A DNA stretch of 64,000 bases from Oopsacas minuta (taxonomy: Eukaryota > Animalia > Porifera): positions 1,285,458-1,349,457 of the forward strand of contig JAKMXF010000332.1 in assembly GCA_024704765.1 (NCBI GenBank). The letters are read 5' to 3'. Made by a program: the position numbers and the translations under genes. Shown piece by piece: positions 31,832 through 52,267 of the stretch. The first letter of the stretch is position 1. Every line of letters begins with the position of its first letter. The notes beneath the pieces were generated by a model. It was not told where the DNA came from, searched no databases, and was given only the letters and a program-made list of their open reading frames with translations.

Positions 31832-33144
31832 CAGGGTGGCTTTTAAGTTCTGTCCCATGATTTATAAGAACCATTTTTCCATGCTGAGTCTTTGCTATTA
31901 GATATATCTTATTAGTTTACCTTATTATACTGTATTTAACATAAATATACAGTTTCAGAGTACAATTGTAGAGAAATTTCAATTTTATTAGTGATGGAAC
32001 GTGAGAGGTCGGCAATTGTAGAATTATTTACAAAAGGACATCCTTCAAGGGAAATTTTGAAGATCCTGAAACTCCCTCTAAACAGAAGGAAATTTGTATA
32101 CCGCACTATTAGGCGATACAAGGATACTGGAAAAGTTGAAGATAGGGCGAGATCAGGCCGTCCGTGCTCAGTAACCACCCCCAGCTTAGGGAAAGTCATC
32201 GCCCAGCGAATTCGCCGAAATCCTAGACGTTCCATAAGGAAAATGGCTCTAGATCTGAAGGTATCAAGATGTGCAATGACTAAAATTGTGAAAAGGGATT
32301 TAGGGATGAGTTCATTCAAGCGTAAGAAGGTACACTTCCTTTCTCAATTGGTAAAGGAAAAAAGGGTTGCAAGATGCAAAGGTGCGTTGGGCCGGTACGC
32401 TGTTGAAAATCTAGAAAAAATATTATTTTCAGATGAGAAAATATTCACTATCCAGGAGGCAACCAATGTACAAAATGATCGTATACTTGCATCATCTCCT
32501 TCCAAAGTCGACGAGAAGTTCAGATATGTTAGCCGAATACAGAACCCTAAGTCGGTGATGGTTTGGGAAGGGGTGTCAAAAATGGGCCGGACACCATTGG
32601 TTTTTGTACCACAAGGGGTAAAAATCAATTCAATTAATTATCGAGAAATGGTTTTGGAGTCAGTATTGAAGAATATAGGCCGAGACATGTTCGGAGGTAC
32701 TTCATTTGTTTTCCAGCAAGACGGGGCGCCAGCACACACTTCTAATGTTACCCAGTCATGGTTACATGACAATTTTCCTGGTTTTATAACCAAGGAAGGA
32801 TGGCCTCCTTACAGTCCTGACCTGAATCCCATGGATTATTCTGTGTGGTCAATTCTCGAGACGAAAGCTTGTGTTAACTCTCACACAAGTATCAAGTCAC
32901 TGAAGAGGAAACTTTGCCAAGAGTGGAATAAAATTCCCCAAAAAACCCTCCGTACTGCTATTGAGGCCTTGCCAGATCGAATTACACGTGTAATACAAAA
33001 TGAGGGAGGCTATATTGAATAAAATTCGCGAAATATGTTTTGTCTCTGAATCATAAATTAGAGCAATAAATATCATTACCAAGCTATATATATATATTGA
33101 TAAATAATAGTTTTTGCATGGGACATAACTTAAAAGCCACCCTG
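31832..33144 (+). mobile_element. Intact Tc1/mariner-superfamily element, DD37D (maT/Bmmar1-like)
   Basis: 28-bp TIRs CAGGGTGGCTTTTAAGTT(C/A)TGTCCCATG with 1 mismatch, TA target duplication on both sides, 1313 bp. Confidence 0.95.
31991..33022 (+). CDS. DD37D transposase, 343 aa, uninterrupted
   Basis: HTH and GRP motif, FSDEK, FQQDGAPAH, WPPYSPDLNPMDY; 37 residues counted between the second and third catalytic D. Confidence 0.92.
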   Translation: MMERERSAIVELFTKGHPSREILKILKLPLNRRKFVYRTIRRYKDTGKVEDRARSGRPCSVTTPSLGKVIAQRIRRNPRRSIRKMALDLKVSRCAMTKIVKRDLGMSSFKRKKVHFLSQLVKEKRVARCKGALGRYAVENLEKILFSDEKIFTIQEATNVQNDRILASSPSKVDEKFRYVSRIQNPKSVMVWEGVSKMGRTPLVFVPQGVKINSINYREMVLESVLKNIGRDMFGGTSFVFQQDGAPAHTSNVTQSWLHDNFPGFITKEGWPPYSPDLNPMDYSVWSILETKACVNSHTSIKSLKRKLCQEWNKIPQKTLRTAIEALPDRITRVIQNEGGYIE

Positions 33145-33471: not shown

Positions 33472-36400
33472 TTAATCTACAAACACAAAGGATTCTAGTC
33501 CAGGCTGAGGTAGATGTGGTAGAACGATATCTTTAGGAAACGTCTTGCGGACAGTTAACTCCTGAAGCTCTTCTTGACGCTTAAGTAGATCAAACAGGTC
33601 TTTCGGGTCATCTAAATAGGTGTCTTCTAGATGGATACCACGGATATTCGTCCTTTGTCCCAAACCGCGAATAACTGGATCCATCGAGTGGAGCGTACGG
33701 GTCAAATCAAGAAATTGTACGTCATACCCATTATCATCATCTGTCTTCTTCTTCTCTCTGGCGAGAAGCAGTTTACGTAACAGAGAAATAGTATTTTCAC
33801 GATCATCTCCCTTATTTATAAAGTCACAAGCATAGAAACGAAGACCAATACTCCTCTTGGGGATTAGTTTCATGTAATGATCTAGTGTTTTAGGATTATT
33901 GAAGTTAGCACATTCAACATCCATGTAGAATCCGGAGAAAGTGTTCTTTCTACAAACAGAAGTAAGTGTGGTAAAGTACTCTCTGTATTTTTTCCCAATT
34001 CTGTAATGATCTTCGTTATCTAACTGGGATCCGCTAAACTTTATGTGAACAATTCTTACAAAAGCATTTTTCAAGCTCTCCACCATCAGCTCGTAATCTT
34101 CTCTATCCATTCGCATCAAATCAACACTAATACATACAAGTGGAGTCTCATATAAATGTTCAGAAGAAAGCACTCTACAGTAGGATGAGAATTCGATTGG
34201 ATCCAATTTCGTGTTTGGGATTATGAAATAGAATTTCCCCAATTGACTCTTTTTCCCATCTTCTGGAGTTGCTTGAGCTTCTTGAGCTTGTTTGAATGCT
34301 AGCATATTTATGTGCTTCGTCTCTACGATATAAGGCAGCGCGCCCAGATGAGATTTCGTATATTTCGCGTACTTTTCCCTTCGATCTACAGTGAGTGTAC
34401 GGATACATCCGTCAAACGGAAGCCATTTTACTTGATCTTCTTGGAAGATACAACTAATCAAGAATACAGCCTCTTTACCCAATAGCCCACAATTGAATTT
34501 AGCTACCATTCTATAGATTTTCAATTTCTCGCCAGTAAAATATTCGAGAAAACCTTTGCGTTTTGGTGCTAAAATTTTTTCTTTTTCATCTTTGAGGAGT
34601 TTTCCTTGGTTCTCATCCTTATACAGATATTCATAACTCATATAGAATGCAGTTAAATACTCCTGAATTGTCAAATGAGGAAAACTGTGATCAGTTTTAG
34701 TGTCTTCGAGTTTCTTGCGCATGGAGGAAACTAACAGGCCAAGCCCGATTGGGAGTTCTTTCCCTTCTAACCCAGGGTTACTTCCAATTTCGTGCTCACG
34801 GAACATAATCTTCCTGATTTTGATTCCATCGAAGGCAATGCGACAAATTTTGAGGTAATAATCATAGACGAAATTTGGCATATTTTCAAGTGTCTCAAAA
34901 GCATAAATTTCAATAGTCTGACTCCTTCTTATTTGACGCCTAATTAAAAACATGATAATTTCCTTGTATGCATCAGTTAGCGTGTTGAGCCCTTTGCTGA
35001 GGAGACTTTGGCTTACTCCTGACTCTTCAATCAGAGAAACTAGCAACTCAATTGTGACAGGAATAAGGGATAACGCATCTAGCTCGCGTTGATTTCTTAA
35101 AACTCTACGCAATCGTCTCTCATAAATTGGAGATTTCTCTCCCAAACGTTTCTTAATATATTCGTTCCTTTGAGCTTTATTAAAGCCTAAAACTTGGTAA
35201 ATCTTTCCCAAACTGATTATAAATCGATACTTATTCATCATTCCGTTGAACGCCCCGACACGACTTGTAATCAACAAACTGCATCCTTTCAGAACATTCA
35301 TCTTCAATATTTGTAACAATAAAGAATCCTCAAAGTAATTCATAGGGAATTCATCCAGTCCGTCAATAATCAGCAGCAAGTTCTTCCCATGTTGGTCAAT
35401 AATGTCCTCTCTTATCGCTTTCCAATTCTCGTAGTCCTCCAAAGCAATTTCAATGAACCGGTCCAGTTTGTCCTTTAGTTTTATCTTTTCATCCTTTTCA
35501 ATCTCTTGCCATTTACTATCTCTGCATGTTACTAAGAGGGTCCAGCGATTCTGAGGGAGATCACCGCAGACATACAGATCTACTATTTTCCTACAGTAAA
35601 TAGATTTACCTGTTCCGGGATTACCGATTAGGACAATTCGTTTGTCCTTATCTTTCGTGAGTTTGTTTAGCAGATCTTTGCCTTTATTGGCATCTGCTGA
35701 ATCGTATTCTGGGAGCCAGGGTCCGCTCCTCTTGACACAGTTCTCTATTTCGAGTTGTCCACTCTCTTCATTTGCTGTAACTTTGTCCACGTCATCAGTA
35801 ATCATAAGATCTACGTATAGATCGCGAAATCTACCAGCTCCACTCTCTGAGGCCAGGATAGGAATATCTACAATGTTAGTTAGCATCAGCTCTTTCAATT
35901 CTAACATTAAATACTCATTTTCAACGTTTGGATTGTAGAGAAATGCGTATAATTCTTCTTCAAATTGTTTCTTGTTTAGCTTAGAAATTTCTGGCATAAA
36001 TTCTCCAATTTCTCTAGCAAGAGCTTCCAAACCATTAGTTTCTTGAAATATGTTCACTAATGGAGTAAGATCATTCGATAAGTAATTCGTTTTTAGCATT
36101 TTGATTGCGAATTTCTCAAAAGTATCTTGTTTGGAATCTGCAAGCATTTCGCCTATATCCTCTTTAGTTAATTTGTTTTTCAGCTTTAACATTAAATTAT
36201 ATACAGTCTTCTCCTCTGTAATACTTTTGGAAAACTCTGTAGTATCCATCCTCTTCACTAAGACCTCATCTAGTTTACGTAACCTATCACCTAGGTTCCG
36301 AGCATTAAAAGAATAACAGTATTCAGATAATTCCATGGGAGTGATGTTAGAATTCAGAAGAACTTTTTGAAGAAGAAGCTTACCGTTCTTTATTTCATTT

Positions 36401-36531
36401 TGTGGGTCAGAAATTTGACAGGTTTCCTTGAGTTGGTGTAACAGATCCTCTCTTATCAGTTTCCCATTCCTGCTACAGAAAATATCGATTTTATCCTTAT
36501 CTTTCTGTGTAGTTCCATCAATCGAGGCCAT
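33472..36531 (-). CDS. NLR-type protein, 1019 aa: predicted tandem DED + NACHT + short degenerate LRR region
   Basis: DLYVDL pre-NACHT motif, Walker A GNPGTGKS, Walker B LLLIIDGLDE, sensor-1 LLITSR, VLGF, winged-helix FPHLTIQEYLTAFY, HD2 YRMVAKFNCGLL; about 4 LRR-like units (VQFLDL, IRGIHL, LQELTV, LESFVF). The N-terminal ~190 aa resemble caspase-8 tandem DEDs by eye. Confidence 0.9.
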   Translation of the reverse strand: MASIDGTTQKDKDKIDIFCSRNGKLIREDLLHQLKETCQISDPQNEIKNGKLLLQKVLLNSNITPMELSEYCYSFNARNLGDRLRKLDEVLVKRMDTTEFSKSITEEKTVYNLMLKLKNKLTKEDIGEMLADSKQDTFEKFAIKMLKTNYLSNDLTPLVNIFQETNGLEALAREIGEFMPEISKLNKKQFEEELYAFLYNPNVENEYLMLELKELMLTNIVDIPILASESGAGRFRDLYVDLMITDDVDKVTANEESGQLEIENCVKRSGPWLPEYDSADANKGKDLLNKLTKDKDKRIVLIGNPGTGKSIYCRKIVDLYVCGDLPQNRWTLLVTCRDSKWQEIEKDEKIKLKDKLDRFIEIALEDYENWKAIREDIIDQHGKNLLLIIDGLDEFPMNYFEDSLLLQILKMNVLKGCSLLITSRVGAFNGMMNKYRFIISLGKIYQVLGFNKAQRNEYIKKRLGEKSPIYERRLRRVLRNQRELDALSLIPVTIELLVSLIEESGVSQSLLSKGLNTLTDAYKEIIMFLIRRQIRRSQTIEIYAFETLENMPNFVYDYYLKICRIAFDGIKIRKIMFREHEIGSNPGLEGKELPIGLGLLVSSMRKKLEDTKTDHSFPHLTIQEYLTAFYMSYEYLYKDENQGKLLKDEKEKILAPKRKGFLEYFTGEKLKIYRMVAKFNCGLLGKEAVFLISCIFQEDQVKWLPFDGCIRTLTVDRREKYAKYTKSHLGALPYIVETKHINMLAFKQAQEAQATPEDGKKSQLGKFYFIIPNTKLDPIEFSSYCRVLSSEHLYETPLVCISVDLMRMDREDYELMVESLKNAFVRIVHIKFSGSQLDNEDHYRIGKKYREYFTTLTSVCRKNTFSGFYMDVECANFNNPKTLDHYMKLIPKRSIGLRFYACDFINKGDDRENTISLLRKLLLAREKKKTDDDNGYDVQFLDLTRTLHSMDPVIRGLGQRTNIRGIHLEDTYLDDPKDLFDLLKRQEELQELTVRKTFPKDIVLPHLPQPGLESFVFVD

Positions 36532-37119
36532 GAAAGAATCAAGGATGTAGAAAGGAAGTCGAGACTTTTTTCTATTGATAAAACTACCTATCGACAGATG
36601 GAATGTGAAATAGCACAGTCGGGTATGCTTATCATGAATAGACTACATAGGCTTATAGGGTGTATATTGTATGTTATACTAGCTGGGTTAGCGGTCGCAG
36701 GGCTCTCAACCTGGAAACCTTCAAAATTGTTAGATTAGCAATTTAGTATTATTGTTCTATGAAAAGACCAGGGATTCTGCAGTATTTATTGACCCGAAAT
36801 TGTTCGAGTATTGCTGCTTTGCAGAATATATACCAGTACTTCAAATTTTGAGCTGAGCGATCACAACACGACACGAACCGTTTCGTGTCTGGTTGATATA
36901 TTCGTGGAGGTCATATCCCAAGCAAATCTTAACCAAAATATGTACATATGAGCATGTACAAATCCTCGGACAGCTAAAACCCACAAATATAGTGCCCCGG
37001 AGGGCACTTTATTTTGTCAACCGTTATACTGTAGTAATCGGGTAAGCTGATTACAAATATGAATTTATCACCAACGTACTGTGAATATGTTGCTACTTTT
37101 ATATTTTGCTCAATTCGAG

Positions 37120-37176
37120 GCACGAAGTGCCGAGGCCCATGCAAGCCGCACAGCGCAAGCAAGCGAAGCGCGCTAG
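37120..37176 (+). mobile_element. Helitron-like 3' terminus
   Basis: GCAAGCGAAGCGCGCTAG|T, identical to the termini at 33209 and 60086. Confidence 0.6.
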
Positions 37177-38852
37177 TCTTAAGTAAACACAGTGGCTTTA
37201 AATGGCTATCCGTAGGCTTTAGGGTCTTGGGTACATTTAAAGTGCATAAAATGTATTATGTACCTATGGGTTATTGCCTATAGCTAGTTGATTGACAGCA
37301 AAATATTTTTGGTATAGCTTCTATTTTTGAGCTATGATGACGTAATCATAATTTACGCAACATATAAACGAGCGTACAATCTATCTAGGTTGTAGTTAGG
37401 GGTATAAAATCTATTATTTACTTATGGGTTAATCACTATTTAAGGTAGATTGACAAGATTGAGAATTTTATAGGGCTTCTATTTTCTTGTTATGATGACA
37501 TAAGCAAAACTATAAAAGTTAAATACCGGAAGTATCTGTGTTATTTGAGTTATTTAGCTAAAGTGTTCACACTAAAATTATGTACCAAGGAATAAAGTGT
37601 TTAGATTATCAATTTAGCGTTCTTTTTGAAGTATTATTACGGAAATAGCAATTTTATCTAAGAAACGAAAATAATTAAATTTTGAAATTTGTCGGGTAAC
37701 TCAGACGTTTTTGCGTGTTCTTAATAACCAACGGTTAATTATTCGTTAAATTTAAATTTAACTATTATAGCCTTATTGCAATTCAAGCGTTTCGTCATGT
37801 CATGGACTCCTCAGTTGCCTCGCCTTTTCCGCAATACACATCAGATGGATCAGTGTTACTTAACGTTTACGTCACAGGGGATATGCCGTTGCGGGTCGCG
37901 TTTCCATTATCTGGGTTCGCCATGATCGGGATTGCGTTGCCTGAATAGCCTCGGTCCCACAAAGTTCGATGTACCTTGCCTTTGAGCGCTTTCGAAAACT
38001 ATTTGTATGGAAGTTGAAGAAGGAGGGCAAGACGGTACTCAAATATTAACGAATAAATAATGTCTTGATCGTTAGTCTGGTGAAACAAATTTGTACATTT
38101 CAGCCTGCAGGTGTGTCCGATTCTTCCATATTCTTTACACTTAAAAACATTCGAAAACCTATCACAACTGGACAGATAGATTAATACGCACTGAAGCACC
38201 ATGTTCAGACTTCAATTCGCTGTATCTTCTCCGAATTGAGGAGAATTCGCCATCTGAAAGATCAAATATCTGGAAGGGAATCGACTGCCGTTCTGAAAGA
38301 TGGTTGAGAGAGAAGAAAATCAAGTGCTTCCTGGTTATTGATTTAGAATTCGAATAGTTGCTAGAAATTTGTTAAATAAAGTAGTATAATTATGAATTGC
38401 TTCAAATTCTGAAATTCGTAAATTAACGGGTCGCTCTATAAATGCGGATACCGACATTTCGCTACTTATTTGATTGGTCAATTTTAATTATTATTTTTAA
38501 TTAAATTATTCCCCTTAAATATTATAAAATCTACCCTTGTAGAATCCCAGTTATAGTTTAGATTATTGTAAGCCGTTCAAAGTATTGCGTCTAAATTGCA
38601 TTGAGTATACTTTCAGAAGTTACGTCAATCAAATAATTCGAAACAACTGATAATGTTTATACATTAATTGGAATGTAAAGCTCAGCAATCATCATCAAAT
38701 TCTAGACTCTGTAAACATCGTACAGCTGTTTTAAGAAGTCAATAAGCTCCAAAATTCAATAAATAGGATTGCTTACTTCAATTGTTCAGATCAGTTTTTC
38801 TCAAACTAATTATTCATATATTCTTATTGTATTTTTTCAATTTTATTCATCG

Positions 38853-40267
38853 ATGGCAGAGCCTCCTTCTGATCAACCATTCAGGTGATCAACACCATCA
38901 GAGGAGGCAAGAAGATGATGGAGGGAGGCTATAAGTTTATGGTATAGAGGAGGATTGGAGATGTGGTGCACTGGCAGTGCGAGGAGAGGGGAAAATGTAA
39001 GGCAAGAATACACACCAAAGGTACAGAGATAGTGAAGCGCACAAGTGAACATACTCATACACCTGGCGAGTAGGCCGTGAGCTGCTGCGAGACGAAGATG
39101 GGTATCAAGAGGAAAGCGCGGGAGTCCCAGGATAGCGCACACCACATAGTGGGCGAGTGTTTGCAGACAGCATCAGAGGGTACTGCTGCTAAACTACCCA
39201 AGCTGGACAGCCTGAAGCGGACAATACAACGCCAACGTGCTAGCGTACTTGCAGCGCCAGTACAGCCTACCACTCTAGCAGAGCTAGCTCTACTAGCAGT
39301 CTACCAGCAGGCAGCCAAAGGAGAACAGTTCTCACTCTACGGCTCTGGTGCAGACGATGTACACAGATTCCTCATCTTCGGGATGCAGCAGCGAAGCAAG
39401 ATCTGGCTAGCTGATGGCACCTTCAAGCCGGCACCTCCCCTCTTCGCTCAGGTGTATGTGGTGCATGGACTCCGTGGAGGAGATGATCCTATGAAGACCG
39501 ATCATCTGTTACCGAGCCTGTTCGTGCTACTGCCCAACAAGACGGAGGCTGCCTACCTGAGGATGTGGGAACAGATCCGCCTACTCTGTCCACTTGCCCA
39601 GCCTCAACAGATGCTCCTGGACATTGAGAAGGGCGCGATTACCAGCTTTGAGCATGTCTGGCCTAACACAGTAGTGAAGTGCTGCTTCTTCCACCTCACA
39701 CAGAATATCTGGCGACATGTGCAGTCTGCCTACACACATGACGAAGAGTTGGCTATGCGCATCCGGAGGATACCAGCCCTTGCTTTTGCCCGACCAGCAG
39801 ACGTACCCGATCTGTTTGATCAAGTGGCAATGGACCTCCCCCTTACGCCTGAGATAGGCGAACTAGTCGACTACTTTGAGAGGACGTATATCGGCCGCAC
39901 AGTTGCCAGCGGATACCATGTAGCGGCGACGTACCCTATTCACTTGTGGAACAACCACATCGGCACGCCCTTAGGGCTCCCCCGTACAACCAACGCTGTA
40001 GAGGCATGGCACCGCAGCTTCAATGCCACTGTCGGCTGCCATCACCCCACCATATGGAAGTTCATCCTCTCCTTCAAGCGTGAGCAGGGCCTAGTGGAGG
40101 TGCGGCATGCTAACTACCTTGTTGACAAACCACCAACCAAGCGGAGGCGGTCCCAACAGACTGAGGAAGCGTTGAAGACTCTAGTTCGTGGATATTATTC
40201 TACAGATCGTTCTAAAATGGAGTTCTTGCAGGGTGTAGCACATCATTTCAGTCTGGGAGCCGATTAA
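38853..40267 (+). pseudogene. FLYWCH-MULE transposase pseudogene, relatively GC-rich
   Basis: GYKFMV*RR..HWQCEERGKCKARIHT..HTH, two in-frame TAG stops and an apparent frameshift near the start; then a 396-aa ORF with WLADGTFK, CCFFHLTQ, PRTTNAVEAWH, CHHPTIWKFI. Confidence 0.9.
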
Positions 40268-40688
40268 TTTGTTAATCTAAAGGATTATCTCTAATCAATG
40301 TATTTGAGGGCTAGATAATACTTTGATTAACATATTAATCGGCTCCCAGACTGAAATGATGTGCTACACCCTGCAAGAACTCCATTTTAGAACGATCTGT
40401 AGAATAATATCCACGAACTAGAGTCTTCAACGCTTCCTCAGTCTGTTGGGACCGCCTCCGCTTGGTTGGTGGTTTGTCAACAAGGTAGTTAGCATACCGC
40501 ACCTCCACTAGGCCCTGCTCACGCTTGAAGGAGAGGATGAACTTCCATATGGTGGGGTGATGGCAGCCGACAGTGGCATTGAAGCTGCGGTGCCATGCCT
40601 CTACAGCGTTGGTTGTACGGGGGAGCCCTAAGGGCGTGCCGATGTGGTTGTTCCACAAGTGAATAGGGTACGTCGCCGCTACATGGTA
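39914..40688. repeat. Long inverted repeat (foldback) of the MULE 3' end
   Basis: Arms 39914-40290 and 40313-40688, ~22-nt loop. Only one mismatch seen in the ~350-bp coding part (CAT/TAT). Confidence 0.95.
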
Positions 40689-41461
40689 GATGCTCTGAAT
40701 ACAGAGAGATGGGTTGCAAAAGTGTGGTAAGAATATCAAATCATCAAATTGTATATATATATATATATATATCCACCCTATGACAATAATTATGAAATTC
40801 ATTAGTAATACAATACGAACCAGAGTAGTAATTCATCTTTAAAGTCCAACAAAGGATCACTCGATAGGGTGGACAATTTTGAGAATGGAATGTTGCTACA
40901 TTCCTGGGATATTCTAACGTTGCAGGGAAAATATAATCCTGAACTTCTCGAGTGACCACTCAAACGACGTGGAATCCTTCAATGATTACAATTATTGACA
41001 TAAAGTTACGTTTCAGATTACACTGAAGGAGTTGTGTCCATTTTAACATTTCAGAATGTCTCCAAGTGTCAATTTTAAGTGGCTAAATATAGAATGCCAA
41101 GCGAGTTATTCATTACACTCACAGTTTCTTAAACTACATGGTCTAGAGAACTAAAAACTGCAGAGAAATGATTGTTGCCAGATGTTGCAAGGTTTCTAGA
41201 AAATATATGTCTGTGCCACCAGACTACAGGCACATAAAAAAATGGAAGACTCTGATTCTAACTATAATTTCTATTCCCTTCATTAACAGTAAAAGTTTTA
41301 AAGAAATCGGGAATATACTTAACCTGATACTCACAACAAGCTTATAAACATGTCAAGCATTGACATATATTTTACATAAATTGTAAAAATGAAGACTATC
41401 AACACAGTCAAGTCTAAATTTAGATCATAAAATATCCATAACACAGCTAGCCTTTAAAATG

Positions 41462-42154
41462 TTAGGAATCTAAGGGCTTGTTAGGATCTTTAACTTTACT
41501 TTCTAAAGGCATACCCTGATATTTAGTTTTCATCTGTAGCGAATAACCTTTGTGTAAATTCTGCTTTGGACTATTGATTGCTTCAAGAAATGAGGATACT
41601 TCTGATTTAAAACATTCCTCACTTAAAGAGGAAATTTCTTCCTTAAGATCTTCGATATCTTTAGCAAGCAAACACAAATCATTATTTTCAAGCATATCTA
41701 CTAATTCAGTAAGATCTTTTGATACTATTTTTGTTACGAATATTTCAAAATTATCTTGACCAGGGAGCTTCTTACTGATGCACTCAGGAGATAACTCGGT
41801 TCGCAGCATTCTCATCAATTTATAGACTGGACTATCTTCAGTAATAGTTTTAACATCCTTTTCATTAGCATCTATTTTTAACCCCAAAGATTCCGCTAAT
41901 TCATATGACTTTGCACCGAGATCAGGAGCATTGAAAGTACGGCAATACTTCGCTAAATCTCTGGGGTCAATATTTTGTTCCTTTAGAATTTTTCCCAAAA
42001 GACTCGAACCTTTTAATTCATTGTCTGCGTCTTCAATAAGACAAACCTCTTTGAGTTTCCGCCCAAGATCATCTGAAACTAGTTTACTATTATTCCTACA
42101 GAAACTGTTGATTTTATTTTCATCACTAACTGCCATAACATGCTTTGAGGCCAT
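41462..42154 (-). CDS. Tandem-DED-like-only paralog of the NLR N-terminus (230 aa), or truncated NLR pseudogene
   Basis: Aligns colinearly with NLR residues ~1-235 (KINSFC/KIDIFC, LKEVCLI/LKETCQI, YCRTFNAPDLG/YCYSFNARNLG, SITEEKTVYNLM/TITEDSPVYKLM) and stops just before the DLYVDL motif. The ORF is uninterrupted. Confidence 0.7.
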   Translation of the reverse strand: MASKHVMAVSDENKINSFCRNNSKLVSDDLGRKLKEVCLIEDADNELKGSSLLGKILKEQNIDPRDLAKYCRTFNAPDLGAKSYELAESLGLKIDANEKDVKTITEDSPVYKLMRMLRTELSPECISKKLPGQDNFEIFVTKIVSKDLTELVDMLENNDLCLLAKDIEDLKEEISSLSEECFKSEVSSFLEAINSPKQNLHKGYSLQMKTKYQGMPLESKVKDPNKPLDS

Positions 42155-43348
42155 ACTTGTCAGTATTGTATGATAAATATTGACAGGCTAATACGTATAA
42201 TTCAAAAGATATTATAAAGCTTAAGACCTTCAGAACCAGGATGAGAATCTACTTGAAAGAGTGTTAACCTTGTTACGTCACATATATATGTAAATTTGCT
42301 ATATTTCATAAAGGTATGATTATCGATGTATCTCAACCAAAATAGGAATGGCCCTGAGATCTCCTGCCCTCCCTCAGGAAATTTGAAGAATTTCAAGTGA
42401 TAGCTATAATTATCATTATATAACTTTAAAATTTGATCTCCCTATTATGAAATCCTGTGAACAGGGTGCTTATATTTTTCTGGGCTTACGGGACCAATTA
42501 TTTTTCAACAAGTCTTACGGTAGAGAATTTACCTCATGGCCCCAATAGCAAAATTGGTGTATACGCGTATTAATAATACAATATACAGTAAGTTATCCGA
42601 ACAGGATGGAACCGATAGGGTTCTGATAACTAAAATTCTACTGCATTAGGCGCCAAGTTTGGGTATCTGGATCCCCAAGTTTGAAGGCGGATAATGTATT
42701 TATGCGAAATTTAGATGGTAGCAAGTAGCAACAATTTCGCCTGGTGGACCCGCCCCCCAATTTTGAACTTGTTCCCTAAAACCTGACGCCAATGTGTATA
42801 GTCAAATATTAGTGGTTTTCGGGTTAGAGGAAGAATGAAACATTATTGGATGGAAAATACATGCGTCCGACCTGTACGAATAACTTCTACTCTACTGTGT
42901 GTATTTTAAATTCACCTGGGAACAGGATGCAGAAGAAAGAGGCCATATTCACTAAGATTTCCTAAAAATATTATTTTCATTTAGTTGATTTTTTACTTAA
43001 ATATATTGCTTTATCTTGTTCAGACTGAAAATCTCACTGCGGTCCACCGTATCTTACAGGAACCTAGAAAATGCGTATACTGCCTGTGAACTAAGAATAT
43101 ATAGCTGTTACAAATTTAGTAAGACAGTCGAACCTCTGAGATTCTAACTAAAACACATCTCAATACCCTAATGAAATAACCTTGATATTTGGGAATAGAA
43201 AGTCGAAGAATATTGTAATGACAGAAATTCAGGTAAATCTAAGTTACGGTCAGTCGGGGCACCCTCAGACGAATTTACTGAATTAATAAGGTTATAGAAC
43301 TAGTATGATTTAACTAAGATAAAATCGGAATCTTACAATATAGCGTTA

Positions 43349-46300
43349 TTACTTTCCAACACCAGGTATATTCTTGATAAGCATAGAATTATACCTACGC
43401 AGCTGTAGACAAACATTCCTTGCTATGGGTTGGTAGTCTGTCTCTTTTGTTTTGTTAGATATAAACTCTTCCATAGCGAAATTACTCTGTTGATGATGTT
43501 GCCATTTCCGTTCCAGGTTGCAAAGTTGAACGTAAGTTTCATTATCATTCAGCAGCTGTTTAGCAGATTCATACGTTTGAGTGGTACGGGTTACCAAGTT
43601 CTTAAAATGTTCTCTCTGTAGAGTTAGATTTTCCTTCTCCTCGCCAAGACGAAAACGCTTCTCGGTTTCTGACTGTTCAAGTGCATTGAAGTCTGAGTAG
43701 AGTTTAATCTCAGAAACGAGGGTATTAACTTTACCCTAATTGTAGATATAAATCATAATAAATATTCTTGACTCATTAAATATACAAATAGCCAGGATCT
43801 TCCCGTATAGCATAACCAACTGGGATCCGAGTCTATTTCTAGAACTTGCATGGTTCCCTGTGGTACCGCCACCAGAACTTTGAGGATCTATTATGGATTC
43901 ACAAAATTTGATAGCAAATCTTGTATAATAGTGGTGCATAAAATTTGGTAAAATTACGACTTTAAAATTTGAACATTGAGGTTACCTGTCTCATGCTAAT
44001 CATAACCATATTTCATTTATGTTGGCAATTATTGTATTATTTTGAACAACAAAATTGTATATAAATCATAGGAATTAGGGATAAATATTGTTAAATAAAT
44101 TGATATATAAATTCGGCGTTCAAATTTCTAAAGTTAGAAAATGACCTTAAAAGTGAATTGGAATCTGACCTAAAATATTTAGGGGAGTAAGAAATGACCT
44201 AATTACAACAAAAATTAACACCCTAGGTGATGAGGGAGCATACATTAGCCAGAAATTGGTTTATGGTATGGTCAGAATGTTTGTAAAGTAGGTATTTGTC
44301 CAACTTCACATCTTCAGAAACCCCTTCACATATCCCAAGAAACAATTACTGGCTAGCCATAGCCAAGCGTTCGTCGGTCAAAATATGAACCCAATTCTTC
44401 AGGAGCACCTTAAAATATACTTAATTAAAACGTTCTAGGTCATTTTCCTAATGCATTCGATCAATTTCCACGTTCCCATAATTCCATCAAACTCTGGTTT
44501 TCTTCAAGCCTCCAAAGATAGGTGGTTAGTCTCCTTTTATAATATTTTCAACATATGTATTGGTAATTTAATCTAAACTGTCTCCTCAAGGAGTATAACT
44601 TAAGAGCCTCTCCCCATTTTTGCGATATCCTAGAGTAGGTAAGCCTCGAATTCATCTTGTGTACTTCAGCAGTTAATAATGAATTGCTCAATAAAAATAA
44701 ATACACATATATTACTCACATTCAATTCCTCCAGTTCTGTCTTGAGCTTATCTTCCAGTTGACTAACCTTAGTCAAATCTGACTGCAATCTAACATTGTC
44801 TAATTCTAGAGTTTGGGCAGTGGCTTCAGATTTATCTTTCTCAAACTTTTTATGCTTTAGGTCAGCCTGAAGTTGTTCATACTCTTGTAAGCTAGGAAGT
44901 TGTTTCGAAGAAGACAACACGCGACTAATGTCCTGCAGCTGGTCCACAATGGTCTGTTCTATGTTAGATCGCCGTTCTGTTTCTGTAGACCAGGCTTCTT
45001 CAAATCCTTCCATAAACACTTTCATGTCTCCCTCCTTCTTCTTCATTTCCTGATACTTCTGGTGCTTCTCGCTATTAGCCTAAATAAAACACACAGATAG
45101 TTGCAAATTAGGTATTCACTCTATAATCCGGGAAGTAAGTTTCCCGCTTAATGTCATACTTCTCGTGCGTATGTGGCATTATCCGGGATAATCTAATATG
45201 TATGTATGTGTTCAGTACTAAATAGCAACAAAGGTAGACACAACAACTACAGTCAAAACCGGTTATTTTCTGACTTGCAAAGAAATAGTAAGAAAAAAAC
45301 AGGTTTCTACTGTAAATGCAAACGAGTTTGTTCACACCGAAAACTTTTGCAGACAATATTTCCAAGTGTTTCCTTCTAATAGATTTTTACAATGAACCTT
45401 CAAGCTGTAATTGACATTCAATTATCTTATATTATCCGGGAAGGATACCAAATCTGACCACATTTTTATGACGATATCGGGATATGACAATAACCGATGT
45501 TTTGAGTACAAGAATTGACTAGTGTGGTTTAGGATTTGAACTATTTATGATAATAAGAGGTTATTCTATTAAGCGGTATGATAATACGGAATCCATCTAC
45601 ATTCATTTATACAGAATTGTTCAACGGTTTGTGGTTAGAAGAAATTTGTTTACATTTAGTACAACTTAAGATAAGTTTTGATAACCCTATTACGTATAAG
45701 GGAAAATAGCTGAAAACTGTCATTTAACTACCTAACTTTCGGAAAATGGTGCCTGGTTAGGAGGTGACCGGATCTTGGAGGTGTGACTGTATTTTCTATT
45801 TTAGAAATATCGAAATGATATTATAATATAATACAGTCGAAACAGGTTTATTCTAACTTTTCATGTAATTCTTAATTTCTAACTACGTATTTGTAACGAT
45901 TTATGGTGCAAGCAGGTGCATTAAATCCCAACTTAACTAGTATTCTACATCGGATTATTCTAACTACAGTCGATCCTCCGAGATCCAGAACTCAAAGATC
46001 TGAGCACTATTTTACAAAAAGTTCGAAATGTATTTGAATATTTTCAGTTAATTTCCTTTAAAATAGAATTATCTTCAGCTGTATTTCACATCCAATAAGT
46101 TTCCCACTAACCACATACCGTTATGACATCTACATTCGCCAATTCAAAATACATCAAAATATAATATGTTATAAACAAAATGGATATCCCATAGAGTTAA
46201 TGTTGTTCTGAGATCCAGGCAGTCTCCGCAAGAGACTGCCTGGATCTCAGAGGTTCGACAGTATTAGACCTCCAAAGAAATGGTTAGAAAATAGTCCAGC

Positions 46301-49300
46301 CGAGAGACTGGTAGTGCAGCTCAGGGTTATGTATTTTGTATTTTCAGGAAAAGCACGCAATCATATGATAAATCATGTAGATATAGACTTGAAAGTATGA
46401 ATTTGTAATCTACAGACTCGATTACCTTTGACTAGCAGTTAAATTGAGATCTCTAGCTTGATTTTGAATAATATGCGAAAAGGTGTGAAATATGACTAAG
46501 CATATGATAAATCTGTGAATTTGTAACTTTCAGACAAAATCGGACTCTACGCACCCAATTACCTTTGACAATATGTTGGAACCTAATCTCTAGCAAGAAT
46601 TTTGAATATACATAGAAAGGTGTTAAAATATGATTAATCACCAAAAGGATGTGAAATATTCACTTTAGAAAAATTCATACCCGAGGTGCAAATCTTCGAC
46701 CCAAAATGTATATGTATGCCCATTTTCGTGTTAATTGGACCGCTAGATTTCTCTAAATCTTATTCAGTCATGTTGTTTGTTGTGACAATGTATAAATATA
46801 AATCTTGATAATTAACAATAGATTTAAACCAAACTAATGAAAACTTTAGAGTTCAGACAATCAAATTGAAATATTTTGGATAAGATTGTACTACGTACGT
46901 ATAAGTTGAAATTTAATATTCCTGATTGTAATTAATATACTCTACCTCTTCCATATCCCTGTCCACTTGTGTTATGTCAGCTTGTAGAGACTGTACTTGT
47001 TCCTGCGTTTGGGACAATCTGTCCTGTAACAGAGTTATCTCTTGATTATCTTGCTTAACCTGCTGTAGTAACTTTTCTCTCTCTTGTTCTGGAGTCAGGT
47101 TAGATCTCTCATCAGCTTCCCTCTGAAGCTCTGATCTCTTCCTCTCCAGCTCCTGCAGCTGTGTCATTAGACGCACTGCTTCAGTCTTTACTTCACTGTT
47201 TAGAATCTATATCAAACACAATGTACAATTTATTTGACAAATCTAGCTGTGTATAATTATGATTGCTTCAAATTCTGAAATTCGTAAAATTAACGAGTCG
47301 CTCTATAAAAATACTTGGTGTTCATTTGGGAGAGGCTGGATCTAGTTCTAAATTATAAATAATATTTTGACAAAGCACCCTAAAACTTGATAAAACCTGG
47401 CCACGACTGGCCACAGTGAGTTTTAGGGGTAATTAAGCCAAGGTAATATGTGTTCGGACACATCAAGTGACGTCAAAAGCTATGCATAAATGTTTCGATA
47501 GAGCCCGCAAGGTAAAACAGTATATTATAAATTTATAATATATTTTGTACTAGTAGTGTGAGTATGTGAGAAATGCGAACATACACGGTCAAGAGGGTCA
47601 GTAGTCTGGTGGCAGAGGTGCCAAACCTTACGATATTTGGTAGCGATCATTTCTCTTTTAGTTTCCTAGAGTCTAGACCATGTACAACGGGCGTTCAAAA
47701 AGTTCCCGACCCTACCCCATATTTTTGTAACTATACAGAATATACATGTACAATTGTTATATTTTCTCGAAATAATCACCATTAATGTCTATGACTCGTT
47801 GTAGACGTTCTAGCCATTTAAAAAATACATTTTTATAGTCCCGGTGGGATGTCTTTTGGGGATCTCCAAATTGCGTTCCCTAGGTCGATTCTGGTATCAA
47901 AATGCCTGCCTGCCTACAGGTCCTTTTTCAACTTTGCAAATAGCCAGAAATCACAAGGAGCGAGGTCAGGTGAGTAGGGTGGGTGGTCTAGCTCAACAAC
48001 TCTCATTCTATCCAACTCTGACTTTACGAGCTTAGTTTTATGTGGCCGTGCATTATCTTGCAATAATCGCATGCCCCGCGGTCCAGACTTTGGCCTCCGA
48101 CCCCAGTAATGTTTATCTACTTCTGAGAGGCAACTGTTGGCATAAAAGTCCCGGTAATTGTTTTCCCTTTTGGCATTATAATCTGGGTAACTAGGCCATA
48201 TGCATCAAAGAAAATTGAGTACATGACCTTCTGATCTCTGAAGTCCGGCCTAGGATTGAGAGGAGGCGCCTCACCTTTTACGACACATACCTTATTTCTT
48301 TCTTTGGATAGTGGCTCGTCGTATCTTATCCAAGTCTCGTCACCAATAATGATTTCTGCCAGCCTTCTTGGATCCGAGTCTTTATACTCAGAGAACATTT
48401 TTCTTGCACAAGTTACCCGAAGGTCCTTTTGGTCCTTTGTAAGGGAATGCGGGATCCACCTCGAACAAATTTTGGTAACTCTCAGCTCATCGATAAGTAT
48501 GGAATGAACAGCTCCCGTTGAGATCCCTACACTCGTAGCTAACTCCTCAACAGTGATATGAGGATTTTCTTCAATTCTCCAGCGAATTTCAGAGGTGTTA
48601 CTGCTAGTGACGGCTGATCTGGGAAGCCCGATTCGTTCCTCATCTTCCAGTGACTCTCGTCCTTCGCGAAACCGCTTGGCCCACTCCTTCACAGTAGTAT
48701 ATGAAAGGCTAGCATCTCCATAAACGACTTCCAAGTCAATGAGAATATCCTTCGGGCCAATACCAAGAAGCGTGCGAATTTTGATATAGTATCAGGGCGT
48801 TCAATAAGTCTTGCGGGTCATGTTATATCTCAGGAAATAGTCAAGTAATATATCTAACTTTCATATATTATAAGCCCATATAGTTAAACTCCATATACTG
48901 AAAGTTTCAAGCTTATTCAATACAAATTATGAATTTTTGAGATATTACGTGTAGTCAATTCATACCTACTGTTCAATTTATAGCTTCAAAGGATGATAAT
49001 TCAACCTCAAATGGCGAGCTTTCATAGAGTTTCGCACACTACTCAAGATCTAGCCCGTACAGATCTTCAGCGAGTTACAGAAGATATTGTGCGTGGATTG
49101 CCCTTTCAGATCTACTGTAGAGCATGGGCTGCCCGTTTTAGATCTGGTGATGCTGATGTCACAGATTTGCCTGGATTTGGAAGACCGGTATCCGCCACTA
49201 ATTCAGAGAATATCACACTGATTGAAAGTACGGTCATGGAAGACAAGTGCATTACTGTCAATCAGTTAGGACAAAGAGTGGAGATTTCATTGGGAGCTAT

Positions 49301-52267
49301 TCATACAATTCTGACGTCACCAAAAATTGTGGGTTAAAAGTATACTACGATACGTCTTCATTGAAAGACGTATAAACAACTTAGGTAACATAAGGCCAGG
49401 TTAACCTGGCTAAAACTTGGTCAGTTTGCATTACTTACACAGTCCTAAGCTATACAAGAGGTGAGCGAAGGCCGCCTTATGGGAACACGATCACGAAATA
49501 ATCGCGAACCGCAGAGTGTAAGAAAGTTTTGCTTGCTTGTATAAATAAATAATGATGAATAAATCCTATTGCTATAATTGTTACCTCTTCTTCATACATT
49601 TGTGCTAGTCTCCTAGCTTTCAATAGCTGTTCTTCTTGCTGGTCAATATTCTGCTGCATTACTTCTATTTCTCGACGTATATCTCTGTACTTGTCTTGTT
49701 CTACTTCTTCCAACTGCCCCACTACTCGCTCAGTCTGCTGGCGCTCTTCTAACATCTGTTGTTCAGCCAATTGTACTTCTTCTTCTTTCTTTTGTCTCTC
49801 TGAGAATACCTATAACCATTAATTAATGATATTTGGCAAAATATTCACTAGAAGCATCAAATTTCCTAACCATATGTAACGAATTTATCATTCACGCATG
49901 TTGGTATAACGGGTCTAAACGATTTCTAATATTCCAATGAATGTATCGCAATATTTGACTACAGCAATTATACTATAGTCGGAGAGCCTGCTAGTTTCTG
50001 AATCAATAACTTCTAATTATTAATCTATTTAGATTGGACGTGTTAATCGAATTTCGAAACGTTTAGGTGCGACCACTGGACATCATTAGAGCAGTTATAC
50101 CTAGCCCTTATAACCCAAATGCGATATTTTACACATTCAGTAGACCCCCTTCATAGAATGCAATATATAATTTGAGAACCTGTGGACCCCCTGATATCGT
50201 CTGTGGACCATCAAAGGTCCATTGGGAACCGATACTTCATAGGAAATACGATTGCTGTTAGAATTTCAAATGATATCAATTGATAGAAATCTTCCGCGAG
50301 GTATATATTTATCTATACAGCTATGGAAAGTAGCATAAAACGTCAGATCTCATCCCAATAAAAGCATGTATGAGTATCAAATGAAATCTGAAAGATATTC
50401 TGGCATCAATGGGTGGTTTACTTTGTTATGTTAAATTGTGTTGCATTCTCACAAACTAAAATATATAGTTAGGAGATGTGGCTGATGGAAACTGTACCAT
50501 ACTTCATATCTACAGGCCTCATCTATTAAGCTTATAACTTCAATAAAGTATATGTCCAAAAGCCGTAACCAGACTTCTTAAAATTCCCGCCATGGATTTT
50601 GGAGTGATCCGGTTGAAAACTCACTCGCCATAGAAACAGTAATATCAGCACTAAAAAGATCAACCGTCTTGGTGGACCCCAAGTAATAGTTGTCCCAGGG
50701 TCTATCAAGGGGAAATTGGAAGTTGTTTGGACATATTTTTAATATACTAGTAGTTGACAACCCCTAATTGTCGTTCCAGGAACTCTTGAATGACAAAATA
50801 TAGGCAACGGATATTCTAGGGGTGAAAGCTCAGGGTAGTAAAATCCCTATACAAAAGTTGTGATTCTTCTAAAGACAATGTAATTAACTGATATATCCCA
50901 CACGTCCTAATTGCTTTCCTAGCAAATAATCCATTCATAATTATCATTATAACTATGTATAGATGAGCATTTACAAACAATCTAATAATTAGATACAAAT
51001 ACACGAAAGATACATCAGGCTGTGAATCACGATATCCATCAAATGGACTATACATTTGTACCTACAATTTATCAAGAGCTTTTTATTAAATATAGTACAA
51101 TATAAAACTAAAATGTCCAGCCTTAGGAAACGAAGTCTCTAGCATCAATTTGAAATAAGGTGTGAAATAATAAATCTGTGAATTTGTAACTTTCAGACTC
51201 TCAAAATCTCAAAATCGGACTCTACTCACCAAATTATCCCTAAAAACATGTTGAAACCTAATCTCTAGCATGAATTTGAATTTACCATAGAAAGGTGTGA
51301 AAAATTCATACCCGAGGTGTAAATCTCCGACCCAAAAATGTACACGTTACCAATTTTCGTGTAAATCTGACTGTTAGATTTCGCGCGGCGGCGCAGACAG
51401 ACAGACAGACGAACGAACGACGTCGCACATCGTCCATGCCACTATGGCATCTCCCTATAAGAGCTGCACTAAAAATACAATACCGTCCCCGGCCCAGCTT
51501 CCCACAAAATCATAGATAAGAAAGGAGCAATTACTTTCCATGGCCAAAACTATATAATTTAGATTATGTAAATCTAATCATTACACAGAAGACATCCTCA
51601 GGGTATCCGAATTATTCATTCAATATATTTCCAAAAGTTATTTGATAGATAAATACTAATTGTGATGAGTATAACATTATATGGTGCTATCATAAACATG
51701 AACTTGTGATACCTTGCGGATCCCTAAATTACTTCATATCGTTTCGTAGCAATAATTTTCACATAATTGAGAAGTAGTACTCACTTGCTCTACAATCATA
51801 GCTTCCCTCTTATTCTCCATTCGTATAGCCTCACACTCTTGCACAACATCCTCTATCCCAGAACCTGTTCCCACTCGCTCCATCAACAGATTATAATCAT
51901 TCATGTCTCCTCTCAGCCCTGATATTTCTGTAGCTAATTGCTGTGCTCTCTGCTCGTACAAAATGTAATTAGCATTGTCTTCTTCATATACGTCTAACTC
52001 ACGAGTTATCTTAGCTTTCTCCAACCCCAGCTCTTGGATTTTACCTCTTAACAGTCCTAGATAGTAAGTGCGGTCTTGTACTGACCTCTCTGGTCCAAGA
52101 CCTTTAGCGGCGGTTTTCACCCCAGTGAGTCCCTGCTGAGTAACTGGCCGGTCTGGTACTCTGATGTTAGCTCGACTACCAGGACGAGGAGGAGGAGCAC
52201 CTGTAGCTAGACGACGAGTGGAGCTAGGTCGAGCTGACATTCCATTCCCACCTAAGTTGCTAGACAT
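43349..52267 (-). CDS. IFT74: Intraflagellar transport protein 74, 5 exons, 571 aa
   Basis: Exons 52267-51785, 49809-49585, 47206-46946, 45079-44720, 43735-43349, all phase-0 GT-AG. Motifs RPVTQQGLTG, YYLGLLR, EREKLLQQVKQDNQEI, NETYVQLCNLERKWQH, DYQPI. Confidence 0.95.
44220..44640 (-). pseudogene. 3' relic of a non-LTR retrotransposon reverse transcriptase, in IFT74 intron 4
   Basis: Manual translation gives LKLYSLRRQ and DVKLDKYL..SDH, resembling the C-terminal LYSLxRRR and LDKYL..PD motifs of LINE RTs; many stops. Confidence 0.45.
45967..46261. mobile_element. pogo/Tigger-like MITE containing a perfect 20-bp hairpin
   Basis: TA|CAGTCGATCCTCCGAGATCCAG ... GGATCTCAGAGGTTCGACAG|TA; hairpin at 46207-46251. 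Confidence 0.65.
46288..46770 (-). mobile_element. Helentron-associated (HINE-like) element copy
   Basis: On the minus strand: subTIR GAGCTGCACT, then stem-loop CCAGTCTCTCGGCTGG, then TTTT; interior shared with the 26441 and 51111 copies. Confidence 0.65.
47684..48790 (-). mobile_element. Decayed mariner (DD34D) in IFT74 intron 2, 5'-truncated
   Basis: WAKRFREG, WIPHSLT, IIGDETW, LLQDNARPH, HPPYSPDLAPCDF (34-residue spacing); frameshift near 48140 and stops; terminus GGGCGTTCAAAAAGTT. Confidence 0.88.
48792..49337 (+). mobile_element. 5' fragment of a second mariner, head-to-head with the first
   Basis: TA|TCAGGGCGTTCAATAAGTCTTG terminus; WAARFRSG..DLPGFGRP..ENI..V.ED remnant, no catalytic domain. 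Confidence 0.75.
51111..51475 (-). mobile_element. Helentron-associated (DINE-1/HINE-like) element copy with 5' end
   Basis: On the minus strand: TTTTT-AGTGCAGCTC subTIR (51470-51461), short hairpin ATGCCA-CTA-TGGCAT, (GTCT)n microsatellite at 51393-51410, shared interior. Confidence 0.7.

Follow-up and report, generated by a model that had tools for sequence, protein, structure and literature searches.

A NACHT gene of the glass sponge Oopsacas minuta is accompanied by an expressed paralogue of its death-fold-like head

A head-only paralogue lies upstream of an NLR-like gene

The window under study, a stretch of 64,000 nucleotides, comes from contig JAKMXF010000332.1 of the glass sponge Oopsacas minuta. 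Its minus strand carries an intronless gene for a NACHT (NLR-like) protein of 1019 residues (33472-36531) and, 4.9 kb upstream, a 230-residue open reading frame (ORF; 41462-42154, annotated as gene P0002) that is paralogous to the N-terminal module of the longer protein only. Both ORFs lie on one strand, where a preliminary description had placed them. GenBank models the longer gene (LOD99_12174, P0001) as 988 residues with a 93-nt intron, and the ORF translation equals this annotated protein except for a gap of 31 residues. The segment spliced out in the model (36291-36383, minus strand, signals GGTAAG...CCTAG/G) is in frame and encodes residues 51 to 81, which are the best-conserved part of the first domain and are kept in both homologues.

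Pfam recognizes a NACHT NTPase domain (PF05729) in residues 298 to 463 of the long protein (35143-35640, minus strand) with a score of 62.3 bits (cut-off 26.7; E 6.4e-17), and more weakly NLRC4_HD2. The NACHT domain expected of an NLR is present. The C-terminal ~320 residues (33472-34434, minus strand) have no match in Pfam when E values up to 10 are allowed, and no Pfam leucine-rich repeat (LRR) was found in residues 678-1019 up to the same E value. Language-model neighbours of this C-terminus belong to NLRP-type LRR_6 clusters (0.75-0.80, below the reliability line of the tool) and serve as a lead only; the region possibly consists of divergent ribonuclease-inhibitor-type LRRs. Because C-terminal LRRs were not detected, "NLR-like" is the best name for the protein.

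Using BLASTP, we aligned residues 1-198 of the long protein with residues 1-190 of the short one at 82/199 identities (41%, E 5e-35), which bears out the proposed paralogy. As the NACHT domain spans residues 298-463, this similarity ends about 100 residues ahead of the Walker A loop. It does not reach up to the NACHT domain, as the preliminary description had it. With the long protein as query, a tblastn search of the window found no NACHT-like sequence behind the short ORF or between the two genes. The short protein is composed of the head and a disordered tail (residues 195-230; 41462-41572, minus strand; pLDDT 28-42) without similarity to the NLR, and GenBank annotates its gene as a single exon of 230 residues. 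No orthologue was found in protein collections or in any other assembly.

DNA similarity between the copies is limited to the coding part and is absent from the flanks, indicating that the duplication is old. Although the copies differ at 38% of nucleotide sites, the short frame is still open, as first noted. All gaps in the protein alignment correspond to whole codons, which has left the short ORF in one frame throughout, and the best-conserved positions are spread over both domains of the head.

Between the genes lies MULE transposon sequence (39077-40802) composed of a plus-strand transposase ORF of 396 residues (39077-40267) and a partial copy in inverted orientation on the minus strand. 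A DDE_3/HTH transposase of 343 residues is encoded at 31991-33022. Since both are long open frames, the description of the surrounding transposons as decayed was overstated. In another species, the copy of the long gene (L002) carries nonsense codons in a full-length NLR, showing that this NLR family does decay. The recent truncation of a full-length NLR, named beforehand as evidence against a functional pair, thus occurs in that long-gene copy but not at the short gene.

The second domain of the head resembles death effector domains

The head consists of two helical domains of ~95 residues each. AlphaFold models of both proteins are confident for residues ~106-186. In the NLR, domain 2 (residues 106-200; 35932-36216, minus strand) is modelled at pLDDT 80-91. 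When residues 106-186 were compared with 48,161 chains using VIA-align, the top 11 matches were all death effector domains (DEDs), with Z 6.4-7.8 and rmsd 2.3-3.9 over 73-94 aligned residues. They include PEA-15 (Z 7.8), MC159 DED2 (7.6), the DED2 of caspase-8 and cFLIP (6.8-7.3) and the FADD DED (6.4), followed by a PYD (5.9) and a DD (5.3). Domain 2 of the short protein (residues 106-193; 41576-41839, minus strand; pLDDT 73-93) gave KSHV vFLIP DED2 (Z 6.7), MC159 DED2 (6.6) and PEA-15 (6.5) as best matches, and superimposed on cFLIP DED2 with Z 7.0 and rmsd 2.3 over 67 residues at 22% identity. Its residues 107-177 gave Z 5.4-7.0 to the DED2 of cFLIP, vFLIP, MC159 and caspase-8. In both proteins the best matches are DEDs throughout, for the most part the DED2 of tandem-DED proteins. 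All these Z values are below 8, a range in which, as the tool warns, common helical arrangements can score. The models give good support, not proof, for a six-helix death fold whose nearest solved structures are DEDs, and they do so for domain 2 only.

Sequence searches did not return a DED. Pfam detected none in either protein or in their separate halves up to E 10, with a faint Death_3 match (E 0.087), and PDB sequence and profile searches found none for either protein. A classic DED carries an RxDL motif (charge triad) in helix 6. By inspection, the three proteins have N-A-R-N-L, N-A-P-D-L and N-A-F-E-L where a second glass-sponge family of NLRs, here called A6, has N-R-x-D-L, so the arginine of the motif is missing from the proteins studied. 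In domain 2, the N-R-T-D of A6 aligns, again by inspection, with N-G-L, N-D-L and D-K-D.

Domain 1 is probably a divergent DED

Domain 1 of the NLR (residues 1-105; 36217-36531, minus strand), a candidate DED1, has six predicted helices at pLDDT 31-53 and no Pfam or PDB sequence match. Its counterpart in the short protein (residues 1-105; 41840-42154, minus strand) has five helices at pLDDT 47-68. Structural comparison gave no death-fold match for domain 1; that of the short protein, which is poorly modelled, matches unrelated helical proteins. With whole models, Foldseek ranked the tandem DEDs of vFLIP, cFLIP and caspase-8 first or close to first in alignments of 173-192 columns, at non-significant E values of 0.75-4.7.

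The A6 family (P0005-P0011, ENA assembly ERZ25072730) has the same plan, a double helical head of ~200 residues followed by NACHT, and one member is located 6 kb away from the single relative known for the O. minuta NLR. The two heads are collinear in hhalign (7-215 against 1-206), with a score of 36.8 (P 8.7e-5) compared with at most 19.6 in 36 column shuffles. Five of the seven A6 members match Pfam DED with a sub-threshold E of 1.2e-6, and the domain that does so is the first, with which domain 1 of the NLR is collinear. As judged from this sequence relationship, domain 1 is probably a very divergent DED. Together with the DED-type domain 2 this makes a divergent tandem DED the most likely identity of the head. 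Of the tandem DED originally proposed, the models support the second domain, while the first is without death-fold match and neither is recognized by sequence.

The two families also differ. A6 retains N-R-x-D-L and the sub-threshold DED matches, both of which the O. minuta pair lacks; member P0005 additionally matches FISNA in Pfam; the NACHT domains are only 25% identical; and no head-only paralogue was seen beside A6 genes.

The short gene is transcribed and its frame has stayed open

Evidence for expression comes from one run (X4) of one sample, read as contigs. This run is RNA, since its contig ends coincide with exon joins of a neighbouring gene. Over 41542-42189 the contigs reach a depth of 1400-2300 compared with 94-193 in the flanks (about 10-20x), similar to the exons of the housekeeping neighbour. 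One contig spans 42032-42189 and then leaves the genome at a TAG splice acceptor (42188-42190, minus strand), ~33 nt upstream of the ATG, continuing with 11 letters that are absent from the whole window. As trans-splicing of a spliced leader has been documented for glass sponges (PMC10282587), the mRNA is probably capped by a trans-spliced leader. Among the contigs listed, those of high depth end at 41542, and a 629-nt contig of mean depth 193 continues downstream of the gene. The contigs thus show a transcript of the short gene and its foreign 5' leader, but do not place the 3' end.

The pairwise dN/dS of the long and short copies is 0.44, rather than the value near 1 that the preliminary description had named as counting against it. 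At dS ~1 this ratio is not assignable to the branch of the short gene because dS is saturated. At local base composition, a random frame of 230 codons is open by chance with a probability of ~1e-7, and simulated neutral drift leaves the 230 codons open in 4% of runs after 0.1 substitutions per site, falling to 0.4% after 0.2. Overall, the short gene looks real and selectively maintained.

A possible regulator of the neighbouring receptor and alternative explanations

The reading we favour, with slightly better than even confidence, is a pair specific to glass sponges, in which an NLR-like protein with a divergent tandem-DED head is accompanied by a maintained, expressed head-only gene whose product would tune the receptor. 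An old partial duplication would have created a free-standing head-only gene beside the NLR, which would then have kept its frame under selection and been expressed as its own mRNA. By analogy with POP1/POP2, CARD-only proteins and cFLIP-S/vFLIP, the short protein may bind the NLR head, or the downstream partner of that head, by homotypic death-fold contacts. It could in this way cap, compete with or bridge the NACHT-nucleated oligomer, and receptor output would be tuned by inhibition or by help. From POPs, COPs and cFLIP-S we infer a decoy or adaptor role. A variant in which splitting of the NLR-like head independently produced a FLIP-/POP-like regulator, with the head signalling to an effector other than a DED caspase, is in our view improbable.

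The short ORF may instead be a non-functional relic of duplication that is transcribed through a kept promoter or trans-splice site and open by luck. Such a relic would agree with the failure to find an orthologue in any other assembly, with the disordered tail unrelated to the NLR, with the nonsense codons in the other species' full-length copy and with a nonsynonymous branch ~1.45x as long as that of the NLR head. DNA runs X2 and X3 moreover both carry a different letter at 42090, inside the short ORF, which by hand translation changes the invariant Asn22 to Ser. We nevertheless regard this explanation as rather doubtful, as neutral drift would seldom leave 230 codons open, the frame is intact across gaps with a dN/dS away from 1, RNA depth equals that of the housekeeping neighbour and domain 2 is still predicted to fold, at pLDDT up to 93. 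Less probable still is that the 230 residues are not the true product but belong to the opening coding exon of a gene that continues further downstream, or to an alternative first exon used by the NLR. The unplaced 3' end of an abundant transcript, the contig of depth 193 that runs on and GT dinucleotides resembling splice donors at ~41499 and ~41513 (by eye) would fit such a structure. On the other hand, high-depth RNA is collinear past the end of homology (41585) into the tail, which rules out splicing from the domain boundary to the NLR; the X4 contigs report no splice joint inside 41462-42189, no NACHT-like coding sequence separates the genes and the GenBank model has one exon.

PEA-15 is a single-DED regulator of ERK, and it is the top structural match of NLR domain 2 and near the top for that of the short protein. 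The short gene might accordingly encode an independent death-fold adaptor or regulator, like PEA-15 or FADD, with partners unrelated to the NLR and linkage as a mere trace of duplication. The age of the duplication, with flanks that share no similarity, is compatible with this, and between heads only 41% identical homotypic specificity may have drifted. We consider such an adaptor unlikely, though less so than the other two alternatives, since the best-conserved positions run through both domains, as would fit a shared interface, and known death-fold-only paralogues usually act on the pathway of their parent (PMC3775265). Because the gene pair is small and intronless, binding, filament and speck assays are straightforward.

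Comparison with known death-fold receptors and regulators

Amphioxus, sea urchin, cnidarians and demosponges have DED-NACHT and DD-NACHT NLRs in which, as predicted here, a death-fold head is fused directly to NACHT, and such receptors have been proposed to recruit death-fold caspases without an ASC-like hub (PMC2575513, PMC3879445). For DED-NACHT proteins of amphioxus, sea urchin and Nematostella, direct caspase recruitment was put forward earlier (PMC2575513). Such fusions, and the idea that they recruit caspases directly, are already described; the FADD-independent recruitment of a DED caspase suggested beforehand for the O. minuta NLR would be of this kind. According to the parts of these reports considered here, the heads of those NLRs are detectable by Pfam, whereas the O. 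minuta heads are not, and no linked head-only paralogue is reported (PMC2575513, PMC3879445). The O. minuta protein further differs from them in the lack of a Pfam-detectable LRR. A survey of Aphrocallistes vastus found no bona fide NLR (PMC12909245); our data indicate that glass sponges, reported to be without them, nonetheless possess NACHT receptors, whose death-fold heads have diverged too far for Pfam to recognize them.

cFLIP-S and the viral FLIPs (MC159, KSHV K13) are tandem-DED-only modulators of DED assemblies, and in both sponge proteins domain 2 finds its best or nearly best structural match in their DED2. FLIPs are paralogous to caspase-8, whereas the short sponge protein is paralogous to an NLR. 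No DED sequence model recognizes the sponge proteins, which unlike FLIPs also lack the RxDL arginine and have a domain 1 that is a candidate DED. The control of cell death and inflammasomes by death-fold-only decoys such as cFLIP, POPs and COPs is commonly described as a late acquisition of vertebrates, primates or viruses. If the variant with a non-canonical effector is true, a death-fold decoy circuit exists in one of the earliest animal lineages.

Genes for death-fold-only regulators are neighbours or derivatives of their parent genes. POP1 is 14 kb away from ASC, CARD16/17/18 (the COPs) are found beside caspase-1, and POP2 descends from an NLR of the NLRP2/7 type by loss of the NACHT and LRR parts (PMC3775265). 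Like these small primate proteins, which come from the duplicated head of a neighbouring or parental gene, the short sponge protein is limited to the head, has a signalling protein as its paralogue and is expressed. POPs and COPs consist of a single PYD or CARD and have diverged much less, with at least 64% identity, compared with a double, DED-like head and 41% in the sponge. Since the lineage is that of a glass sponge, the pair originated independently of them. If our reading is true, regulation of this kind evolves easily and independently in any lineage with death-fold receptors.

The two genes and their neighborhood

Two related ORFs lie on the minus strand of the window, an NLR-like ORF of 1019 codons (33472-36531, -) and a short ORF of 230 codons (41462-42154, -) situated 4.9 kb upstream of it. 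The short protein (residues 1-190) aligns with the N-terminus of the long one (1-198) at 41% identity (BLASTP, E 5e-35), bearing out the paralogy that the preliminary description had seen. We refer to these common ~200 residues as the head, composed of domain 1 (about residues 1-105) and domain 2 (from about 106 into the 190s). Pfam places a NACHT domain at residues 298-463 of the long protein (62.3 bits, cut-off 26.7) together with a weak match to NLRC4_HD2, and detects no LRR there. A language-model search leans toward NLRP-type LRRs for the last 320 residues, with scores that serve as a lead only.

GenBank lists the short ORF as a separate 230-residue gene. The long gene is annotated as LOD99_12174 with 988 residues, differing from the ORF by one in-frame 93-nt "intron". 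The segment cut out (36291-36383, -) is bordered by strong splice signals (G/GTAAGC ... CCTAG/G) and encodes NLR residues 51-81, where domain 1 is best conserved across all three homologs. It is either spurious as an intron or an optional in-frame intron whose excision would gut domain 1.

Using tblastn we found no NACHT remnant behind the short ORF, and at the DNA level the two loci resemble each other in the coding part only. The short gene thus goes back to an old duplication, which either was partial from the start or cleanly lost the remainder afterward. The two genes are now separated by MULE transposon sequence (39077-40802), with a 396-aa transposase ORF (39077-40267, +) and an inverted partial copy (40335-40802); on the other side of the NLR-like ORF is a 343-aa HTH/DDE_3 Tc1-mariner-like transposase (31991-33022, +). 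Both transposase ORFs are long and open and look potentially active, not decayed as had been supposed of the surrounding transposons. The upstream neighbor (43349-51800, -) has multiple exons, encodes a coiled coil and, from its ORFs, looks like IFT74; the locus sits between this neighbor and a BOP1-like gene. A gathering-threshold scan of the whole window matched no Rfam family, curated hammerhead models included.

Relatives of the head in glass sponges

A word-index protein search for homologs of the head recovered nothing beyond the two proteins. One true relative, P0003 (E 3.9e-28), came from an exhaustive profile search of 1.84 billion representatives; a further hit of that search, the repeat-rich kinase-like protein P0004, owes its score to the sum of six weak repeats and was discarded as a false positive. 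The head is thus nearly an orphan.

P0003 corresponds to codons 1-198 of a gene at locus L002 of ENA assembly ERZ25072730. This gene (L002:10001-12904, +) shares 50% identity with the Oopsacas NLR across 1017 residues in one frame and is its sole known relative. Two of its codons are nonsense through single-base changes, reading TAA in place of the GAA and AAA of Oopsacas. The first of these stops sits right at the end of the head, which is why gene calling gave a head-only protein of 198 aa. The L002 copy is therefore a full-length NLR, either recently broken or mis-assembled, and not a head-only gene. The preliminary description had named a recently truncated full-length NLR at an orthologous locus as one case against its reading; a broken or mis-assembled copy of this kind does exist at L002, as a copy of the long gene and not of the short one, and its neighbors differ from those in the window.

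A different NLR, P0005, lies 6 kb from this copy (L002:625-3975, +). Its head matches Pfam DED and FISNA, and we retrieved six paralogs of it (together P0005-P0011). The family comprises at least seven glass-sponge NLRs of ~1130 aa each, in which NACHT and an LRR-like tail follow a double head whose Pfam DED matches are sub-threshold. Precomputed annotation assigns them NACHT-type NTPase families only and no DED, which suggests that death-fold NLRs of glass sponges are probably under-counted in surveys.

Structural analyses of the head

Sequence searches gave no indication of the fold. Pfam finds no DED at E 10 in either whole protein or in the half-domains, and searches against PDB sequences (phmmer, profile), run with the two proteins and with the alignments of both half-domains, yield chance matches only; the profile of the P0005 family has no match among PDB sequences either. 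An ESM Atlas search by features with NLR residues 1-205 gave no usable match, and searching the Atlas by fold with the model of the short protein returned only unrelated families at TM < 0.35.

We modeled both proteins with AlphaFold2 from a three-sequence alignment. Domain 2 is modeled confidently, with pLDDT 80-91 in the NLR and 73-93 in the short protein, whose tail is disordered. We compared the NLR model exhaustively by structure with 48,161 PDB representatives, and the top eleven entries are all DEDs. They include PEA-15 (Z 7.8), MC159 DED2 (7.6), cFLIP and caspase-8 DED2 (6.8-7.3), KSHV vFLIP (6.9) and the FADD DED (6.4), followed by pyrin domains (5.9), death domains (5.3) and CARDs (about 4.6), all values lying below 8, the caution line of the tool. 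The short-protein model points the same way; among re-aligned Foldseek candidates its best match is cFLIP DED2 (Z 7.0, rmsd 2.3, 67 residues, 22% identity). The order of DED over pyrin domain, death domain and CARD, combined with full-domain coverage in two independently modeled proteins, argues that domain 2 very probably adopts a DED-type death fold.

Domain 1 is weakly modeled (pLDDT 31-53 in the NLR, 47-68 in the short protein), and these poor models show no death-fold match for it. Three observations speak indirectly for a DED there. Whole-model Foldseek searches rank tandem-DED proteins first or close to it across 173-192 columns, at E 0.75-4.7. The three-sequence head profile is collinear with the seven-sequence P0005-family profile (7-215 versus 1-206; hhalign score 36.8, P 8.7e-5), compared with at most 19.6 in 36 column shuffles and 14.1 for the reversed profile. 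Domain 1 of the P0005 family in turn matches Pfam DED at E 1.2e-6 in five of the seven members (29 bits, cut-off 35.9). This full-length comparison with seven sequences is the only informative one by hhalign: domain 1 against domain 2 gave no internal-repeat signal (E 0.17), and the half-domains against the single L002 neighbor sequence were insignificant. RxDL is a motif of canonical DEDs, and it speaks against a canonical form here. Its Arg is kept in the P0005 family and replaced by Ala in the three head proteins, which lack the motif in domain 2 as well. We consider it reasonably likely that the whole head is a divergent tandem DED. Of the tandem DED proposed in the preliminary description, the second half stands on the AlphaFold2 models; neither Pfam nor PDB sequences contribute a DED match, and domain 1 is supported indirectly.

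Divergence and expression of the short gene

Could the short ORF be a decaying remnant that happens to be open? Pairwise dN/dS between the copies, on which the preliminary description made its reading partly depend, is 0.44 with dS about 1, and the gaps between them keep the reading frame intact. Neutral-drift simulations left the 230 codons without a stop in 4% of runs at 0.1 substitutions per site, falling to 0.4% at 0.2; between the two copies, 38% of aligned nucleotides differ. Taken together, these values make it unlikely that the short ORF is a long-dead pseudogene, but they do not single out selection on the short branch, whose nonsynonymous length is ~1.45 times that of the NLR-head branch; branch-specific dS from three sequences was saturated and inconsistent and was left unused.

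A second haplotype is present in contigs of two DNA read runs from the same sample (X2 and X3). It is marked by a 9-nt insertion at 42156, two bases upstream of the ATG of the short gene, and by a T>C change at 42090 that by hand translation turns the invariant Asn22 into Ser. The latter is the only difference inside the 693-nt ORF, versus six single-base differences in the ~750 nt upstream.

None of the four available runs, whose contigs were examined over 40900-46800, is recorded as RNA; one of them, X4, was recognized as such by loose ends at exon joins. Its contigs are deep on the exons and shallow on the introns of the IFT74-like gene, and loose ends at 43735, 44719 and 45081 read the exact sequence of the next exon, which identifies X4 as RNA. 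The contig ends confirm IFT74-like introns at 43736-44719 and 45082-46947. Transcription of the short ORF is seen in X4 contigs across 41542-42189 with a depth of 1400-2300 (summed bins up to 4600), similar to the IFT74-like exons, against 94 in the upstream spacer and a mean of 193 in a 629-nt downstream contig. As contig depth is a mean along the whole contig, it does not place the 3' end of the transcript. The abundant RNA runs collinear with the genome past the end of the homology, and on this ground the short ORF as an alternative first exon spliced to the NLR was rejected.

At 42189, ~33 nt before the ATG of the short gene, the X4 contig departs from the genome at a TAG acceptor (42188-42190, -). 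Beyond this point it carries 11 letters, in mRNA sense AAAAAACTTAC, which occur nowhere in the window. The junction agrees with the spliced-leader trans-splicing known from glass sponges (PMC10282587), and AAAAAACTTAC is probably the 3' end of a glass-sponge spliced leader. A comparable TAG is present ~40 nt before the ATG of the NLR.

Comparison with known death-fold regulators

The O. minuta genome paper makes no mention of NLRs, caspases or death domains, and a recent survey of the glass sponge A. vastus reports no bona fide NLR (PMC12909245); the gene pair therefore appears to be undescribed. Overall, the short gene is best read as a head-only paralog of a death-fold receptor, here with a double, DED-like head that a glass sponge has derived from an NLR-like gene; this reading draws on predicted structures, a single RNA run and analogy. 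Of the sensor/decoy module first proposed, both ORFs are confirmed, and the interpretation is supported in part.

By analogy, assembly of the NACHT domain would nucleate a death-fold oligomer, which the short protein might join, cap or bridge; that the short protein acts on such an oligomer is inference only. cFLIP-S and the viral FLIPs consist of tandem DEDs only. Among pyrin and CARD proteins, POP1 lies 14 kb from ASC, three CARD-only proteins adjoin caspase-1, and POP2 is a pyrin domain from an NLR that has lost its NACHT and LRR parts (PMC3775265). The further idea of the preliminary description, that the NLR may recruit a DED caspase directly with no need of FADD, had earlier been put forward for DED-NACHT proteins in amphioxus, sea urchin and Nematostella (PMC2575513). 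Death-fold domains are the common NLR heads across animals, including one demosponge (PMC3879445). Like the POP, CARD-only and FLIP regulators, the short gene fits the design of death-fold-only regulators.
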